Program-made: the position numbers and the translations under genes | Notes under the pieces: generated by a model | Databases searched by the model: none | Told to the model about the DNA's origin: nothing | What the model saw: the letters and a program-made list of their open reading frames with translations, nothing else | Origin: Phallusia mammillata | Taxonomy: Eukaryota | Length of the DNA: 64,000 bases | Direction of reading: 5' to 3' | Assembly: GCA_965637545.1 (NCBI GenBank) | Contig: OZ281494.1 | Coordinates: 18,848,001 to 18,912,000, forward strand | Part shown: positions 13,979-56,388 of the stretch, one piece after another | Position numbering within the stretch: position 1 is the stretch's first letter | Layout of the letters: every line of letters begins with the position of its first letter

Positions 13979-14547
13979 CTATAAGCTGCCTACATTTATG
14001 CCACGACTCGAAATATAATTGTCAATATACACACGAAAAGGCGCATATTTTACTTATTTTGTTTCCTCTTTACCTTCTTCTTCTGAAAGATTTGCAAGAT
14101 CACTGATAACTAAGTTTTCCAAATCTTTGTCTTCTTCATGCATTGTGTTTGCCGTGTCTTCCTGTTTTTCTAGAAAACATAATATTTAAAAATTTTACTG
14201 GTTGTACATTTCTCGAGGAATAAAATGAGTAAATTACCAGCAATGTCATTGTCTCCACGTGCGAATTTTCTTAAACGTCTGCAAAAAATGTCTTACGTTT
14301 TTCTCCAATGTGGGCAACAACAATGGCAATTATGTTGACACATTCGGCATTTAGTGACTAAAAGCATACACATTCTAATTTTGTTTGTTTATTAAATATA
14401 CTACCTTATGCGAAGGCAGGAAAATCGTCTTCGGAATGAGCGAACCAAGCGCCGCGCCAAACGCCGTGGGTAGACCCGCTTGGCGTCGCCAAAGTCAACG
14501 AACAACAAGAAGAGAACGACCAAAACTAGACAAGTCTTCAGTTTCAT
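13979..14547 (-). CDS. Cationic peptide precursor 1 (AMP-like): signal peptide + KRVYPRRLARRLVRSFRRRFSCLRIRRLRKFARG + acidic tail
   Basis: Exons 14405-14547, 14238-14278, 14074-14169, 13979-13989 join in phase (2,1,1). ATG directly follows an acceptor (cag|ATG). Signal MKLKTCLVLVVLFLLFVDFGDA is paralogous to copies 2-4. Tail DNDIAEKQEDTANTMHEEDKDLENLVISDLANLSEEEGSL. The last mini-exon is least certain. Not in the ORF track. Confidence 0.75.
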
Positions 14548-15122
14548 CTGAAACATTGAAACAGTTTAGAATACAATAGATAATGAACACCGCTTTACCA
14601 AATTACAAAAACTTACCTCTGATTACTTGGTTCCACAAGATGAATGTAATTCAACGTATTACCATCACCGTTTTTATGGACATCTACATTCCGTACGTGG
14701 GACAAGAATAAGAAACAAATGAACTTATCTCAACACACAATTTGTGGGCAGTACCGTGGGTTATTGTAGCCTACGCACGATTTAATGTGCATATTTATTT
14801 TTGTTCGGATGTTTTCTGTTGTACATTTAACTCCCGATTTGCATGAGTGTATCTGAGTTTACAAAACATTCAAAAAATTTAAGACCAAAATTGCATGTGG
14901 GTATTTGTTTAAAGTATACAAAACATTATTACATTTTTTAAAACAATTGTCACATGTGGGTACATCTTATATAAGCTGTCGCATTAAACTGTTCTATAGT
15001 TTGTCCAACAAGAAACTCAAACTATTGCAATGTTTATTCATGAAAGCGCACGAACAAATTTGCCACTTGTTTTTAAAAAATGAAACGGAAAACAAAATAT
15101 CAAGTTATGTCATAATCTAAAC

Positions 15123-17380: not shown

Positions 17381-17890
17381 TTAGTTTTCTTCCTCCATTT
17401 TTTCCAAAAAGTCCATTGGATCATCGGCAAAATCTGGATCTTCCTCAAAATTTATCTCTTCAACATCTTCTCCTTGCTCTAAGATATATTTTAATTGTTT
17501 TACTGTTGTTCACGTTACAAGCAAAACCCGTAAAATACCTGGCATTTTGTCCTGTTCATCTTTCCCGAAAAGCCTGGAAAAAAATTATTAATTATTATAC
17601 GTTTTGCTAAAATGCTTACAACCACAAGAGATAGAATACTGCAGAATTAGGATAAAAGTCGCAACTGGATTGTTTTTTAGTTCGATAAATCTATGCTACC
17701 TTCTGCGGCGGAAAAACAATCGTCGGCGCCGGTGAATCCAACCAATCGATCGACGCCGAAAACGCCAAATCGAGCGACGCCGATGACGCCAAATTCGGCG
17801 ACGCCAAAAACGCCTTCGAATTAGCGAGTTCCCGAAATCAATCACCAACAAGAAGAGTAGTAGCAAGCATAGACATGTCTTCACCTTCAT
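17381..17890 (-). CDS. Cationic peptide precursor 2 (AMP-like, Arg/Trp-rich)
   Basis: Exons 17700-17890, 17539-17573, 17381-17478 in phase (2,1). MKVKTCLCLLLLFLLVIDFGNS | LIRRRFWRRRIWRHRRRSIWRFRRRSIGWIHRRRRLFFRRRRLFG | KDEQDKMPEQGEDVEEINFEEDPDFADDPMDFLEKMEEEN*. Probable non-coding first exon near 17955-17990, with a TATA-like TATATAAA (minus strand) near 18011-18018. Confidence 0.85.
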
Positions 17891-21860: not shown

Positions 21861-22425
21861 TTATTCGGTAAGTTTATTCTCTTCTACTTCAAGCAGATCA
21901 TTAATATCATCTGAATCATCAGGAAGACTCTCGAACTCTTTGTCTTCTTCAAGTTTTACGTCTTCGTTGTCATCTTCGTTTTCTATTTGTTACATTAAAA
22001 AGAACAGACCCGCTACGCTTAAAAGTGGCCTAATACGCAAAAATGGAAATACTAAATGAGCTTGGCACACATTTTACGAGAGAGTGATCAATAACTTAAA
22101 TTGATCACTTTGTAGCAAGATTACCTAAATATTGACGGGTGTAGACCATATCAGATTTACCTGAGATAAAGTTGTCTTTTCCAGTCCTGTGTAAGCAAAA
22201 CATAATTTGTAGCAATGGTATTAGTAGCACATAGTTTCAGATAAAAACTTTAAAGACTTGCCTGCTGCGGCGGCGGTAGTAACAGCGTCGACGGTAGTAC
22301 GGTGTTCGACGTCTGTAGATTACAATACGTCTTCGACTTCTTCGTCGCCAAAAAAGCAATGAGTCACTCAGATCAACTACCAAAAGAAAAAGCACAAGGA
22401 GGGAGACGCACGTCTTGATTTTCAT
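21861..22425 (-). CDS. Cationic peptide precursor 3 (AMP-like, Arg/Tyr-rich)
   Basis: Exons 22262-22425 (GC donor AG|GCAAGT), 22161-22186, 21861-21982. MKIKTCVSLLVLFLLVVDLSDS | LLFWRRRSRRRIVIYRRRTPYYRRRCYYRRRSRTG | KDNFISENEDDNEDVKLEEDKEFESLPDDSDDINDLLEVEENKLTE*. Confidence 0.85.
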
Positions 22426-26466: not shown

Positions 26467-27028
26467 TTATTCGGTAAGTTTGTTCTCTTCTACTTCAAGC
26501 AGATCATTAATATCATCTGAATCATCTGGAAGACTCTCGAACTCTTTGTCTTCTTCAAGTTTTACGTCTTCGTTGTCATCTTCGTTTTCTATTTGTTACA
26601 TTAAAAAGAATAGACCCGCTACGCTTAAAAGTGGCCTAATACGCAAAAATGGAAATACTAAACGAGCTTGGCACACATTTTACGAGAGAGTGATCAATAA
26701 TTTAAATTGATCACTTTGTAGCAAGATTGCCTAAATATTGACAGGTGTAGACCATATCAGATTTACCTGAGATAAAGTTGTCTTTTCCAGTCCTGTGTAA
26801 GCAAAACATAATTTGTAGCAATGGTATTAGTAGCACATAGTTTCAGATAAAAACTTTAAAGACTTGCCTGCTGCGGCGGCGGTAGTAACAGCGTCGACGG
26901 TAGTACGGTGTTCGACGTCTGTAGATTACAATACGTCTTCGTCTTCTTCGTCGCCAAAAAAGCGAGTCACTCAGATCAACTACCAAAAGAAAAAGCACAA
27001 GAAGGGAGACGCACGTCTTGATTTTCAT
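26467..27028 (-). CDS. Cationic peptide precursor 4 (paralog of 3)
   Basis: Exons 26868-27028 (GC donor), 26767-26792, 26467-26588. Mature LFWRRRRRRRIVIYRRRTPYYRRRCYYRRRSRTG; signal peptide and tail identical in protein to copy 3. Confidence 0.85.
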
Positions 27029-29417: not shown

Positions 29418-29639
29418 NNNNNNNNNNNNNNNNNNNNNNNNNNNNNNNNNNNNNNNNNNNNNNNNNNNNNNNNNNNNNNNNNNNNNNNNNNNNNNNNNNN
29501 NNNNNNNNNNNNNNNNNNNNNNNNNNNNNNNNNNNNNNNNNNNNNNNNNNNNNNNNNNNNNNNNNNNNNNNNNNNNNNNNNNNNNNNNNNNNNNNNNNNN
29601 NNNNNNNNNNNNNNNNNNNNNNNNNNNNNNNNNNNNNNN
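29418..29639. other. Assembly gap (222 N)
   Basis: Run of N. Confidence 1.
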
Positions 29640-30092
29640 TTCATAACTGGGATCAGCCCTGAAGCGTCTATGCAGACCAGCGATTACGGCACACTCATCT
29701 ATAAATCACAGTACGCCAGGCCCATTGAAGGCGCCATACCGAATCAGCCGGTCACCAAGCATTCACCACCATATGGCAAGGCGTAGGCTAGAAAAATCTA
29801 GCCTGCGGTGGGATTCGAACCCACGACAGGAGTCTTTCCGGGACTCGCGCTCTACCAACTGAGCTACACAGGCTCAGTGGAGAATCCGCCGAAAGTCGAA
29901 TCACAAGCACCGTTGCCTGCCTCGTATGCTGCACATGTCAGCTTCGTAGTAGGGGATCGCCAGATTGACCAGTATCAGTTAAGATGAACATAAATTCATA
30001 ACTGGGATCAGCCCTGAAGCGTCTATGCAGACCAGCGATTACGGCACACTCATCTATAAATCACAGTACGCCAGGCCCATTGAAGGCGCCAT
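29640..30092. repeat. 355-bp-period unit: 98-bp exact direct repeat (29640-29737 = 29995-30092) enclosing a tRNA-like sequence
   Basis: Seen directly. A 22-nt inverted copy of 29946-29967 lies at 30096-30117, at the junction with the LINE. Confidence 0.9.
29800..29873 (-). ncRNA. tRNA-like Pol III unit (non-canonical; probably SINE/repeat-derived)
   Basis: GCCTGTG-TA-GCTC AGTTGGTA GAGC-GC-GAGTC CCGGAAA GACTC-CTGTC-GTGGG TTCGAAT CCCAC-CGCAGGC-T folds into a complete cloverleaf and is followed by TTTTT. C33 replaces U33, there is an extra base before the anticodon stem, and the GGA anticodon lacks a Ser-type long arm. Confidence 0.6.
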
Positions 30093-37409: not shown

Positions 37410-40400
37410 GCAGCCCCAGCAACCGTAACGACACGGCCAATTAACCTTGAAGTGTTACAATGACCAACACTTTACTGTCGTAACAATCTAGTCACTTGAA
37501 AAAACTGACCCGAGATAGGTTTCATGTCTGCCACAAGTTAACTTGTTCAGTACATTGCAACCTAGACATCTTATGACGTAACAATGCATCTGATAGGTTC
37601 TATCATCACGCCATGTCACGCCTTGTGTTTGAACTAGAGTAACCTGTGTTTTGGGGGCTGTGGTGCGTTTTTAATAACGAGTGCATTCTATTGTGGAGAG
37701 AATACAGTAAACATCTCGAAAGTTCTCGGTGTGCCAAAGACAGCGTCAACACAAATAGCAACAGTAGGGATATCTGACCCGATTAGTTTGCGACAATGTC
37801 ATGTCCGAGCACATAAATGTTGAAATTAAAAAAAATATATTTTGGCCTCTAAGCAAATCTTTTTGCCGATTTTAGACTTTGATATGTCGCAAATCTTGCT
37901 TTACAGTACACGAATGTGCGCATAACATTCATGCACGCCAGTAAATCACACAACTTTGCATCCAATAGTTTTTTATCTCATTGTTCAGTGATTGTTTTTT
38001 CACAGAAAACCTTGAGCCACATGATTGACGTGATTAACGCATTTGTCGTGGTTAAAACGTAAATATTACGTACGTTCAAATAAACTTCACGTGTTTCCAT
38101 AAATTGGACTTCTAGTGTGATGTCATATGTTAAAACAGTCGCGCGAATTTCTGACTGTACATCAGTTGTGAGTCGTAACAATTAGTTCGTGTCATTTTAC
38201 TAGTTCACTCTGGCAAGATTTGGAAAACACATTATAACACCGCCAAGTCTAGAACGACATTACCATGAGTTTTAAAGAACAAGCAAGTGGAAAACATGAT
38301 TGGTTATGAAAAAATCTACACAAACAGTATACCACACGTCATAGGTGCAGAATTGATTATGTGTAAAAGTGTGTTAAAACAAGCCATGCAATTTGACACA
38401 TTTCAGTCCCAGCATAATGATCGGCACATTTCGCAGCTAATTTTTAATTTTCGGATCAATTTCTTTTTTCCGTTGCGATTTCATCTTCTACTTCGTCGTC
38501 TTGCTATTCTTCGTTTCCTCGTTTTAATTCTTTAACGTGACTTCTTTGTATTCTCTACAAGATAATATAAGACGTCCTTTTTTAAAACCTTTGTATTGCT
38601 AAGATGGCAGAATATCAGGAAACCAGTCTGATTTTAAAGGGGTGATGGCCACTGGCGTCGCCGTGAAGGGGATAAGCGCAATGACTTCAATCCTGAAGGC
38701 TTGAAAATGCAGATTTTGTCCCCATAACTTGAATTTTTGCTGATGTCGCTACTGATTGTTTTAACAATTACGATTCTGCATTTGGATTTTTTAATTTGCA
38801 AACCAAGAAACTAGAGCCGACACTTTCAGTAATAAGTTACTAAATAATTGTGCTTAAATATGCCACGTGGCTGTGAAATACATGTGCTTGCGTTGCGAAC
38901 TCATAGTACGAAAAAACACTTGTTAATTCCACTTACCTTGGTCATCGAAACTGGGTTTGGATCGCAAGCTTGTGTGACACCTGTCCACCATTAACTGACA
39001 TTTAACTTTCAGCACAATGCCACATCTCTCCTTAAAAGTCTTTGCCAGTTGCTTGCTGGAATGGCAATAAATAGAAGTTTGCAATACAAAATCACACGGC
39101 TATGGACCTACAAGTTCCTACAAATGGACGCTTTATCACAAATTCTACGTTTTTTGACAAAGACATCTTCTTTTTAATACGAGTTATTTCGTAATAGTTA
39201 TTTCTTGAGTTCCTGCCCACTGATGTCGCTTGGATTTGATTTCCACACAGTGCTGTCTTTTATAGGACCACATGTTTGCTTACTGAGTGGTTATGACCTT
39301 GTAGCTCCTTAAACATTTTTTATCAAGCACTAATTGATCGGTCTAGCAGAGTAGCAGTGATGTCATTGAAAAATATATTTTGTCGAAAGCGTCAAATAAT
39401 TCAGGCAACCATTGCAGTTATTGACAGGAAAGTGAAAATAGGGAAAAAGTCGTAGGCATAGTTTGCCAAATTAATTGATATTTAAAGAAAAGTCTGACTA
39501 CCAAATTTCGTGTGGACGGCAACTTGAAAACAATAATTGCCTGACTTCAAAATAGAAATTTTTTGAATGATGATAACACAGGGCAACAAAAAAATATTTT
39601 TTTACTGGTGTCAGTAATGTTTTAATTGATTTTGACTAATTTGAGTGCCCTGATTTCAAAAATGCAATCGGTTTATCTGTATCACGTCTAGTTTAAATGT
39701 TATGGTACATCCACGTTTGAAAAACAATCTATATGTATACACTATAGTGAAACTGGTTTTGAGTATTTTAAGTGGAATTACCGTTATTGCAAGAACAAAG
39801 TTTCGATTTAATTTTAAATGTAACAGGTAGACACTCCTAACAAACAAAATTCCACACAAAAAACAAAAAAAAAGGTTTCAAATTTGTAAGTTGTCAGGTA
39901 TATCGGATATAGGCCTACCCTACACATGTACTTCTGTAACTTTTGGAAATGACTGGCAGCAATATCGTCCCGTTTAATTTACCAACAGTAATTAGCCAGG
40001 ACCACATTATTCCCTCTTCCCTGGCACGTTTCGTTTTACTGATATCCTGTTGGAACCTTTCAGCTTAATTCTCATCATTTATATCCCCTACGTTTTAAGG
40101 GAAGTGTAGCTTTATACTCATTTTCGTTCCGAATTTATCAGACCGCTTAATAACTTAGTTTTGTACTATGTCTAGTAATGTTAGTATATTTCTACTGTTT
40201 TTGTCCATTACTGTAATATTCCAATCAACATTAGGTAAGTGGAGCCCATTGCTTGTCCTAAACCCCCAAAGTCACATCTAAGTGTGCAAGATATGCACAT
40301 TTGATACAGATCTTTTTTTTCTTTTTAGTTGTGTTCAATGGGTATTCACCAGTAATCTAGAATAAAACATCTTGGTAATTCATGCAACACCTTATAGATG

Positions 40401-47342: not shown

Positions 47343-48023
47343 ATCTACCAAATCAAAAGCTTTTCATTGCTTTAAATTTTACTGTTTTAATTTTGTACTC
47401 ATCGCAGCAATTTTAAAAACGCTATGCCATAGTTGAAAAAACGTGATCTATTATTACGTTGGGTCAGTCAGCTCCAGCAACCGGCCAATTAACCTTAAAG
47501 TGTTAGCATGGATGACAATTAACTATTGCAACACTCTGGTCACTTGAAAAAAAGTGACCTGAAATAGGTTTCATGTCATTTTAAAATGTACAAACAATTG
47601 TAGCACATAAAAGTTTATTTATTTTACGTTGAAATTAAAGAATACATTTAGGTCACAAGACAAAACAGAGTGCCGATTTTAGGCTTTGGTATTATGAACT
47701 ATTCATACTGTATACTGTACAGGCTACATTACATTTATGTCGTAATGTTTTTACACGAATGTGCGCACAACAATCATGTTACCATACTTTTTCACATACA
47801 TTAATTAGATTAGTTTTTAAAATCGTTTGATTCTGGCTAGGTTTGAACTTATATACCTCGCCTATAATTTTATATATTTTGCATATAACCTTGCCCATAA
47901 TTTTAAAATGATAATACCATAAAAAAGAATCAGCAAGCGGAAAACATGATTGGTTATGAAAGGAAACCACAAGTCATAAGTGCAGATTCGATTTTGTGTA
48001 AAAGCTTGTTGAAACAAAACATT

Positions 48024-49024
48024 TCAGTCCCAGCATAATGATCGGCACATTTCGCAGCTAATTTTTAATTTTCGGATCAGTTTCTTTCTTCCGTTGCGAT
48101 TTCGTCTTCTACTTCGTCGTCTTGCTATTCTTTGTTTTCTCGTTTTAAATCTTCTACGTGACTTCTTTGTATTCTCTACAAGATAATTTTGAGCGTCAAT
48201 ACATAAAACTTTGTGTTGTAAAGAGGGCAGAATATCAGGAAACCGATCTGATTTTGAAGGGGTGATGGCCACTGGCGTCCTAATGTTTTGAAAATGCATA
48301 ACTTATAATTATTTGCTGGTTACGCTACTGATTGTGTTAACAATAACAATCTTCCATCTGCATGGCGTTTGTAATTTGCGGAGCAGTTAGGTGAGTAGAG
48401 CCGATACATAATTTAGGAAAACTGTATGTTTGTCGTATCATAGATCTCTAAACTTATGCATCTCACTTATACAATAATTGTACTTTTAAGTACATGTAAT
48501 TGTGTTAAAAACTCATAGTACAATAAAATAATCCACTTACCTTGGTCATCGATACTGCGTTTGGATAGCAAGCTTGTGTGACACCTGTCCACGATTAATT
48601 GACATTTAACTTTCAGCACTATGCCACAACCCTCCTTAAAAGTCTTTGCAAGTTGCTTGCTAAAATGCCAAAAAATAGGAGTTTACAACATACCAAATTA
48701 TACGGCTATCGACCTACAGGTTAAATGTGTGCACTTTATCACAAATTATACTGCATTAGGGACAGAATGATTATATTTTTATACAGCCTAAAAATTTACT
48801 ATTATATAAAGCAAGGATTACACCTTTTGCACTTGGCGTTTACTATGTAGAAACACATTTCCATTTTCCTCTTACCGTGTAAAAACCATTTTGTCAAGTT
48901 GATCGCTGTTTCTTTTCAGCTGCTTTGCCAGTTTGTTACCACGACGACGTCCTGCTACGCCTGACGCCACGCAAACCACAAGCATTATCACAAAAGTTAA
49001 CATTGCGTTTTTTGACAAAGACAT
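48024..49024 (-). CDS. Secreted, highly cationic 6-Cys protein (~140 aa), unknown family
   Basis: Exons 48876-49024, 48541-48659, 48024-48175 in phase (2,1). MSLSKNAMLTFVIMLVVCVASGVAG | RRRGNKLAKQLKRNSDQLDKMVFTRKQLAKTFKEGCGIVLKVKCQLIVDRCHTSLLSKRSIDDQENTKKSRRRFKTRKQRIARRRSRRRNRNGRKKLIRKLKISCEMCRSLCWD*. Synonymous changes against the pseudogene copy (CTT/CTG, ATA/ATT, CAA/CAG) support the frame. Confidence 0.8.
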
Positions 49025-50441
49025 CTTCTTTATATAATACGAGTTATTTCGTAATAGTTATTTCTTAAGTTCCTGCCCACTGATTTGATTTCCACACAGT
49101 GGTGCCTTTTATAGGACCACATGTTGGCTTACTGAGTGGTTATGACCTCGAAGCTCCTTAAACATGTTTATCAAGCACTAATTAATCAGTTTATCAGTGA
49201 TGTCACTGTGAAAACATATTTTGTTGAAAGCGTGAAGTAATTCAGGCAACCATTGCAGTTATTGCCAGGAAAGTGAAAACAGAAAAAGTCCGAAAATAGG
49301 CTATCCATAATTTGCTAAATTATTTTTGAAACAACCTGGCTACTAAAATTCGATCGGCAACTGGAAAACAACATTGCCTGCGAAAATCACTTCAAAATAG
49401 AGATTTTTTTAATGAAAAGTAGAAAAGTAGAAGTTGGTAAACTTTTCAAAACGACAAAATTTCATTGGCACTGCGGTTGCCCTCGGCAATAGATTTGACA
49501 ACTAAATTATTGATATTCCACAGGTAAGATAATACAAAAATTCAGTAGGCCTACATGATGAAAAAAAGTTTCGGGTTGGATAAAATGCTTGGATATTATG
49601 CGATGTTTTGTTTTCAACGTTATAATATAAGCAATATTTACTGCGGCAACGGTTTTACCGATAAAACCAGGGCTTATCTTAAAAGGTCTTAAATTTTACT
49701 TCACCCCGAAGTTGTTTGTTTTGATCTTAAAGGCGGTCGCACCGATCTTAAAAAACATTGGAATTTGCTATTACAGTTCTACACAGTTCCCTCATCAGAA
49801 ACCTAAACAAACATTTACTTTCGCTGTGAAATTAGACGTGTAACCCCACCAATGAACACAGGTTATTTACGCTATTGACCTGGTTTTGTTTGATAAGGTT
49901 GCGTTGGCAGATGTGATCCGCTTTCTATTTGTATCAGTGGTTCTCAACCTTTTTTAGTGTCGGGGCCAACAGTAATTGTGTAAAGTGTATAAGGAGATGA
50001 CAGTTTTTTTTAGAATCAGTGGCAAATGGGTATTTCCTTGCTACTCGTACTTGCTAAATTTAAAACTTTAATTTCTTGGAAACAATCATAAGCTAAAATT
50101 CAAAGCATTTTGTAGTGCCTCAAAACTTAACTTTTTGAGCGCGCAAATAAATTTTATTTCATCATGTTTAGAAGACAAATACCACATGTTTTAATGTGAC
50201 TACTAGGAATACACGCAGCTAGCCGAAAAATTCCAAGCAGATGCTTCTATCATCAAAGTAAAAAACTCCATAAAAATCCAATGGCCTCAAACAGCGGAAT
50301 ACTGAAAGGAAAGAAGCAAGGACAATCATTATTCCTTGCAGTTTTATTTTCGACTTCTAACTTTCAGACATGTACTGCTCTGTGTTAGGGTATTTAGTTG
50401 CGAAACATAAAAAGCAAACATTTTACGAAAGCGGCAAGATT

Positions 50442-55884: not shown

Positions 55885-56388
55885 ATGAAAGCAGCCATAC
55901 TTCTTGCCATTTTGTGCACAGCCCTTCTGCTTTTGGAACAGAGCGTAGCCTGGAAGATACGAAGAATTCGTACATGGAGAAAACATAGAAAGTATGAGTG
56001 CTATCATCCCACAATTATTTTTTTTCTTTAACAATACACCCGTGTGGTGGCAAGTACCACGTTTTAAAACCTCTTTTGTATATTATAGATATATTTTTTG
56101 AACTATCAATATGGTTTATAGCTGGTTTCATCGTCGTCGCCGCCGCCGCCGTTGTTTCTTCGGCAAAGATGGAGCTTCACCACAAGAGACTAAATGGGGT
56201 AAGAAAAAGTTAAATGATATTCAGGTCGATTTTGGTTTGCATAGTGTATGCCATTTTGCTTAAAGCAACAGTAAAATACTGCTTTCTGTAACCTTCAATG
56301 TATTTTAGACATACATGTTGAAAACGAGTTTCCCGATCTGGGTGGGTTGTCAAAAGACATCACTGATGACAACAAAAACAGTTCCTAA
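55885..56388 (+). CDS. Cationic peptide precursor 5 (AMP-like, Arg/Trp-rich)
   Basis: Exons 55885-55991, 56122-56198, 56309-56388 in phase (2,1), with cag|ATG start. MKAAILLAILCTALLLLEQSVA | WKIRRIRTWRKHRNWFHRRRRRRRCFFG | KDGASPQETKWDIHVENEFPDLGGLSKDITDDNKNSS*. Not in the ORF track. Confidence 0.82.

Follow-up and report, generated by a model that had tools for sequence, protein, structure and literature searches.

Phallusia mammillata carries a poly-arginine member of an ascidian family of secreted six-cysteine proteins, candidate precursors of two-chain cationic peptides

What is a secreted protein that combines six cysteines with a long run of arginine and lysine, what is it related to, and what might be made from it? 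These questions are raised by a locus at 48024-49024 on the minus strand of the window, by which we mean the whole stretch of 64,000 nucleotides from Phallusia mammillata that was analysed and to which coordinates refer unless another contig is named. The original prediction, made from the sequence alone, had listed a signal peptide, a basic region, a C-x7-C-x6-C motif, a KR|S dibasic site, an Arg/Lys run of ~35 residues and a terminal C-x2-C-x3-C-WD, and had proposed for them a disulfide-stapled helical hairpin with a cleavable cationic loop, reminiscent of the ascidian turgencins and possibly a two-chain product.

Read from the sequence, the gene has three exons on the minus strand, and the joined frame of 420 nt encodes 139 residues. 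Exon 1 (48876-49057) holds a 5'UTR of at least 49057-49025 and codons 1-49 plus 2 nt; its coding part (49024-48876) starts with the ATG at 49024 and specifies the predicted signal peptide (49024-48950), followed by the basic N-terminal region. Intron 1 (48660-48875, 216 nt, GT..AG, seen as CT..AC on the plus strand) is in phase 2, and the paralogues on contig C4 (see below) have a phase-2 intron at the corresponding position. Exon 2 (48541-48659) encodes the first cysteine core, C-x7-C-x6-C-H-x3-L-S-K-R-S, with Cys61 to Arg84 at 48628-48557, and the short acidic start of a linker. Intron 2 (48176-48540, 365 nt, GT..AG, phase 1) falls between the acidic and the basic parts of that linker, and exon 3 (47986-48175) supplies the poly-Arg/Lys segment (residues 93-127, at 48167-48063), a G-R-K-K motif, the terminal C-x2-C-x3-C-W-D (48056-48027), the stop codon (48026-48024) and a 3'UTR that runs to at least 47986.

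Transcript evidence came from contigs of three small public runs (X1, X2 and X3) of one 2020 study, whose type was guessed to be RNA. Only exon words of the gene are present in these runs, and the introns are present in a DNA run of the same organism. The contig joints 48175>48541 (X1 and X2) and 48659>48876 (X3) coincide exactly with the predicted splice sites. One X1 contig spans 48905-49057, an X3 contig links 48876 to 48659 and thereby skips intron 1, and together the RNA-type contigs cover 47986-49057, with 0 mismatches in the contig that joins exons 2 and 3. The RNA test of the three-exon model had been set beforehand, and these contigs bear the model out by joining the exons across both introns exactly; the window gene is real, transcribed and spliced as modelled. 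A candidate TATA box (TATAAAAG, 49106-49113, minus strand) is located upstream of the RNA-type contigs, about 50 nt from where they start (49057), and the promoter block that includes it is also kept in a nearby pseudogene copy. A DNA contig from a further run (X4) shows 8 differences over exon 3; we considered an allele as its source and rejected it, and this contig is more likely the pseudogene, 90% identical to the gene and placed at a 90% threshold.

Each of the elements listed in the original prediction could be located in the 139-residue protein. The predicted signal peptide occupies approximately residues 1-25, with hydrophobic residues at 8-21 and then a cleavage region of small residues, and is followed by a basic stretch at residues 26-50. 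The first core, which we call core 1, reads Cys61-x7-Cys69-x6-Cys76 and leads to K83-R84|S85 after the third cysteine, in an S-I-D-D context. Residues 93-127 include 22 Lys or Arg among 35, and core 2 (region 118-139) ends in Cys130-x2-Cys133-x3-Cys137-W-D and the stop, with no C-terminal Gly. A secreted six-cysteine protein, as had been proposed, is thus what the predicted signal peptide and the six cysteines indicate. The linker between the cores is 45 residues long and is made of an acidic piece of 6 residues (charge -3) and a basic piece of 39 residues (+22); the basic piece has 16 dibasic positions, one R-x-R-R site, which is the only strict furin motif present, and G-R-K-K just before the last segment. 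The mature part as a whole has a net charge of about +31.

Searches for a named family gave no match. Pfam, queried with the three exon pieces and seven relatives, returned sub-threshold noise only. The family profile found no match among PDB sequences, and Foldseek with a model of a paralogue found none in PDB. A wide search with VIA-align gave a best Z of 2.5, to generic helical hairpins, and a search of the ESM Atlas by features gave no usable match. In word-index searches of a set of 5.8 billion proteins neither the exon 3 frame nor the exon 2 frame of a paralogue was matched, and the window protein is therefore absent from that set within the length limits of the search. No description of the family was found in the literature on the Ciona locus name, on two-chain Ciona peptides or on Ciona neuropeptide precursors, nor was the family found in the literature on Phallusia antimicrobial peptides. 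The family thus has no Pfam entry and no description in the literature searched.

Relatives were nevertheless found with a profile (A2) built from group A, the window gene and its closest paralogues (see below), of which the exon 2 cores and the exon 3 ends, trimmed, were used, and from the one-exon paralogues. Run exhaustively against 1.84 billion representative proteins, A2 matched 14 proteins of 114-185 residues, with E-values from 1.6e-17 to 7e-4. For 11 of the 14 the match reaches the C-terminus or ends no more than 3 residues from it, and for the other three (P0007, P0012 and P0013) only the first half is matched, the match ending 20-56 residues before the end of the protein. The full-length family alignment, used as a query, retrieved four proteins only, all of them already found by A2. 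Every relative that carries a source name is ascidian (Styela, Clavelina, Ciona savignyi or Phallusia), and each named species contributes one to four representative sequences. Those from Styela clava are XP_039255985, XP_077967855, XP_077972931 and XP_039261726, and those from Clavelina lepadiformis are XP_076808244 and XP_076808003. The Phallusia mammillata protein, CAB3263071.1, is 99% identical in exon 2 to a locus on contig C4 and 100% identical in exon 1 to the neighbouring inverted copy. Ciona savignyi is represented by H2ZPD3, annotated as 'ribosomal protein L34' and evidently misnamed because of its basic linker. One further relative comes from a JGI sample, in which the contig's coding sequence for the protein is uninterrupted. 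Named relatives are uncharacterised or misnamed in the databases, so that the word 'unrecognised' in the original prediction holds in the sense that we found no named family and no paper, and in Pfam, PDB sequences and fold searches no confident match to a known family, but not in the sense of an orphan.

What these proteins have in common is more than a cysteine count. The six cysteines are invariant and their spacing is fixed, with C-x7-C-x6-C in 14/14 aligned relatives. The first core follows the pattern C-x7-C-x6-C-[H/Y]-x3-L-x-K-R-S, usually with His after the third cysteine, and residues 61-85 of the window protein fit it exactly; K-R-S and the Leu four residues before K-R are invariant or at least 90% conserved (alignment A3). 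Acidic residues follow K-R-S in most relatives, and a second K-R or dibasic site occurs in the linker of most. In all complete relatives the second core consists of a basic segment and then C-x2-C-x3-C-W, placed 0-3 residues from the C-terminus; the typical ending is C-W or C-W plus one residue, and one relative has Y instead of W after the last cysteine. In all full-length relatives the N-terminus is a signal peptide, and a variable pro-region comes next. We conclude, from these shared motifs, that the window gene belongs to an ascidian-wide family of secreted six-cysteine proteins spread over the three ascidian orders. The genes of Clavelina (L032) and Styela (L033) have three exons each, and their second intron separates the two cysteine cores. 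As a separate observation, a gene with a weak 7tm_1 (GPCR-type) match lies about 8 kb upstream of the Clavelina lepadiformis family member (L032, 1-307, minus strand).

The linker sets the window protein apart from most of its relatives. In 17/17 sequences examined the linker is bipartite, with an acidic part (-1 to -8) and then a basic part (+5 to +25), and its length across the family is 33-50 residues. The window protein shares with the named ascidian relatives the signal peptide, both cysteine cores and this acidic-then-basic order, but its acidic piece is shorter (6 residues), its basic piece is much longer (39 residues), and it ends in W-D where they end in W. In basic charge only the Ciona savignyi protein (+25) is comparable. 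The poly-Arg run is therefore no new insertion: every member carries a basic segment ahead of the last three cysteines, and this lineage has enlarged it, to the quantitative extreme of a trait of the family. The 'cleavable cationic loop' of the original prediction needs to be amended in the same direction: the cationic run is there, as the expanded basic segment before the last three cysteines, whereas the ancestral loop would have been acidic. Every intact group A copy has G-[KR]-[KR] just before the last segment, as do several proteins from Styela and Clavelina.

To place the gene among its paralogues, the assembly that contains the window was searched exon by exon, which gave 17 related loci in three groups, A, B and C. 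To group A, with three exons and a poly-basic linker, belong the window gene, a pseudogene at a distance of 10 kb, and ten copies arrayed in tandem at C1:29.20-29.23 Mb, 10 Mb from the window gene. Array copies have the same three-exon structure as the window gene, and at least two of them are broken, one by a TAG in exon 2 and one by a truncated exon 2. The pseudogene (38398-39451, minus strand) keeps the promoter and the first 19 coding bases; the remainder of exon 1 and the greater part of intron 1 are lost in a deletion of 254 bp, TAA and TGA stops stand in frame in exon 3, and KR-S has become KP-S. Groups B and C consist of five loci on contig C4, which is another chromosome; in these the six cysteines are encoded in one exon, intron 2 having been lost, and exon 2 of the window gene matches a C4 paralogue with E = 1.2e-7 (tblastn). 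Since Styela and Clavelina genes have the same three exons, the three-exon layout is ancestral and was kept by group A. The region C4:17149594-17182627 holds three paralogues of group C (L026, L028 and L029), of which two are arranged head to head. CAB3263071.1 combines the exon 1 that lies beside one copy with exon 2 of the other; in L029 the second cysteine is replaced by Ser, and this copy may be decaying.

Substitution patterns among the seven intact group A genes differ by region. Mean pN/pS is 0.20 in core 1 and 0.29 in core 2, compared with 0.47 in the pro-region, 0.56 in the linker and 0.69 in the signal peptide; the cysteine cores are thus under purifying selection and the linker is looser. 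Between the window gene and the array copies omega is ~0.2 and dS is saturated, which makes the window gene an old duplicate, and the pseudogenes and tandem copies suggest birth-and-death evolution. With the exact splice joints, the purifying selection among paralogues and the relatives in other ascidians, the elements of this gene are far beyond chance.

We modelled the one-exon paralogue L016 with AlphaFold2 as a stand-in for the spliced window protein. Alone, L016 gave three helices at a pLDDT of 66; with a 28-row family alignment the pLDDT was 60, and both models are of low confidence. In the alignment model a helix covers core 1 (residues 16-36, pLDDT 73-80), the linker is disordered (pLDDT <50), and the C-terminal segment is a coil and then a short helix (72-78); K-R lies within or at the end of the long helix. 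Cysteines at i, i+8 and i+15 on a helix would lie on one face and span ~22 Å, and those at j, j+3 and j+7 would span ~10 Å if helical or ~23 Å if extended. A regular, turgencin-like ladder between two helices is therefore unlikely on geometric grounds, given spacings of 8/7 in the first half and 3/4 in the second; a C-terminal segment in extended form, running antiparallel to the helix and stapled to it with pairing 1-6, 2-5 and 3-4, would fit. For the disulfide-stapled helical hairpin of the original prediction these spacings are awkward, and the L016 model shows one long and one short helix at a pLDDT of 60.

Which known system does this family resemble, if any? The insulin/relaxin superfamily, with C-x11-C in the B chain and CC-x3-C-x8-C in the A chain, offers the closest general plan: a signal, a helical first chain with cysteines, a connecting peptide between basic sites, a C-terminal chain that is short and also bears cysteines, and six cysteines in all. 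In most members of the window family Cys-Gly starts the first helix, as in an insulin/relaxin-type architecture. At the same time, the cysteines are divided 3+3 and not 2+4 as in insulin, and C-x7-C-x6-C and C-x2-C-x3-C are different spacings; membership is ruled out by this cysteine pattern, and neither the exon pieces nor the seven relatives matched an insulin family in Pfam. Saposin-like proteins such as NK-lysin and amoebapore also have six cysteines, starting with C-x2-C and ending with C-x5-C in a helical bundle of ~80 residues. Here, too, the pattern differs, there was no Pfam SapB match and no structural match above Z 2.5, and we rejected membership; the misfit to both the insulin and the saposin patterns had been foreseen correctly. 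Centrocins of sea urchins and halocidin of an ascidian are two-chain antimicrobial peptides cut from one precursor and held by a single interchain disulfide. Their likeness to the window family, as secreted cationic disulfide heterodimers after removal of a linker, is by analogy only, as they have just that one interchain disulfide and no motif in common with the family. The St-CRP peptides of Synoicum, of 18-19 residues and with different connectivity, are unrelated.

Kinship with the turgencins deserves a closer look, as it was part of the original prediction. Turgencins A and B of Synoicum turgens are single chains of 35-36 residues with C-x3-C-x4-C, an 8-residue loop, C-x2-C-x3-C and an amidated C-terminus. 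The window family shares with them the C-x2-C-x3-C ending and a hydrophobic residue before the middle cysteine, and both are cationic and from ascidians. The likeness ends there: in the first half C-x7-C-x6-C stands against the C-x3-C-x4-C of turgencin A, a linker of 33-50 residues (45 in the window protein) against the 8-residue loop of a single 36-residue chain, and a C-W-D end of the unamidated type, with no C-terminal Gly, against an amidated one, and no sequence search connects the two. The window gene as a divergent turgencin relative is thus a very improbable reading, and the kinship is not supported.

The reading that we prefer, to which we give a probability of about 0.55, is that the window gene encodes a secreted precursor of a six-cysteine family that would be cut to a two-chain cationic peptide and, in the Phallusia subfamily, would serve as a defence-type effector. 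In the secretory pathway the three N-terminal cysteines would bond with the three C-terminal ones; as each side has three cysteines, intramolecular pairing of all six would require one or more disulfides between the halves. Convertases would act at two places, the KR|S that hardly varies in the family and the basic part of the linker; the acidic piece and perhaps Arg-rich pieces would be set free, and the product would be a disulfide-linked cationic peptide with a helical chain of ~32 or more residues and a C-terminal chain of ~18-45 residues. If G-[KR]-[KR] acts as a classical cleavage/amidation signal, an Arg-rich piece would be freed and a C-terminal chain of ~18 residues left. A two-chain product, already raised in the original prediction, is plausible because KR-S after the third cysteine hardly varies and because the linker of most relatives offers a second dibasic site; judged from these sites and the six cysteines, we would put such processing slightly ahead of an even chance.

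Defence and signalling are almost equally likely roles for such a product, and defence is slightly favoured for group A, owing to its hyper-cationic charge, its tandem expansion with pseudogenes and the signal-plus-Arg-rich ORFs nearby, of which there are at least five others in the same 64-kb window. A secreted polycationic effector of the host-defence type would suit this hyper-cationic, tandemly expanded subfamily best, and its less basic relatives would look more like hormone precursors. Compared with what is expected of an antimicrobial peptide, the protein is cationic (+31); the hydrophobic moment is 0.47 in the N-terminal basic part, 0.35 in the C-terminal segment and 0.02-0.16 in the core helix, which is not amphipathic. 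This speaks against a defence role, as does the barely cationic core 1 of some relatives (-1 in Styela P0004 and in Ciona savignyi P0006) and the fact that the cores are old and conserved, unlike those of most antimicrobial peptides.

The same observations can be read as those of a peptide hormone or other signalling precursor, in which two chains with 3+3 cysteines would be made by the logic of B chain, connecting peptide and A chain and would act on a receptor, the Arg-rich stretch being a spacer that convertases and carboxypeptidase destroy. We regard this main rival as possible, if somewhat doubtful. The nearly invariant KR-S, the common second dibasic site and the acidic connecting piece would suit it, as would cores under purifying selection, conservation over three ascidian orders with one to four representatives per named species, a non-amphipathic core helix, the mild charge of some relatives and the G-[KR]-[KR] before the last segment. 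Tandem expansion would not speak against it, as hormone families can expand in tandem too (bombyxins and nematode insulin-like peptides). What fits it less well is the stretch itself: a +22 segment that is basic in all copies, in ten near-identical tandem copies plus pseudogenes, would be unusual for a mere spacer, and the neighbourhood is rich in other genes for Arg-rich secreted peptides. A broader version, which we hold tentatively, would be a tunicate-wide two-chain signalling or effector system, made in an insulin-like way, with a first chain, an excised connecting peptide, a second chain and three disulfides, but unrelated in sequence and with 3+3 cysteines, of which the Phallusia gene would be a poly-arginine offshoot; the poly-arginine connecting module might then be released as separate Arg-rich, perhaps amidated, peptides. 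It is also conceivable that the protein stays uncleaved, as a single-chain polycation in which the cysteine cores form a folded knob, KR-S is structural and the poly-Arg loop binds polyanions, for which sulfated glycans of the tunic or matrix, nucleic acids and microbial surfaces would be putative targets. Basic character kept in all paralogues despite sequence drift would agree with this, as would the single strict furin motif and the place of K-R in the L016 model, within the long helix or at its end, where it would not be an ideal convertase substrate. We nevertheless consider the uncleaved form improbable, since K-R-S, followed by acidic residues in most relatives, is conserved family-wide with a strictness typical of processing sites, and since a linker with so many dibasic pairs and a predicted lack of order would hardly be shielded from convertases. 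A protamine-like nuclear role, finally, was ruled out by the signal peptide.

Tunicates are the closest living relatives of vertebrates, and their secreted peptides are poorly catalogued. The present finding is a well-defined lead and no discovery of a mechanism: the members of the family were already known, as uncharacterised database entries, and what is new is its definition by motifs, gene structure and species range, for a family that is expressed and covers three ascidian orders. A precursor layout suited to multi-site processing into two chains makes it a target for peptidomics, expression mapping and antimicrobial or receptor tests, and a single scaffold whose linkers range from mildly basic to poly-arginine (+5 to +25) could serve the study of how hyper-cationic modules evolve.

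Several other features of the window were seen along the way. Four ORFs on the minus strand (14404-14556, 17699-17890, 22240-22425 and 26846-27028) have in common a signal of the form M-K-x-K-T-C...L-L-F-L-L-V-x-D, followed by extremely Arg-rich peptides that contain Trp and Tyr, and appear to form a second, unrelated family of genes for secreted polycationic peptides. A short ORF on the plus strand (55885-56028), with a signal-like start and then a basic Trp/Arg-rich stretch, could represent exon 1 of one more gene for a cationic peptide. Between 30050 and 34528 on the minus strand there is a run of long open frames of 146-311 aa, all on one strand and retroelement-like, and a tRNA gene (29800-29873, minus strand; Rfam, 55 bits) adjoins the only N gap of the window, at 29418-29639.
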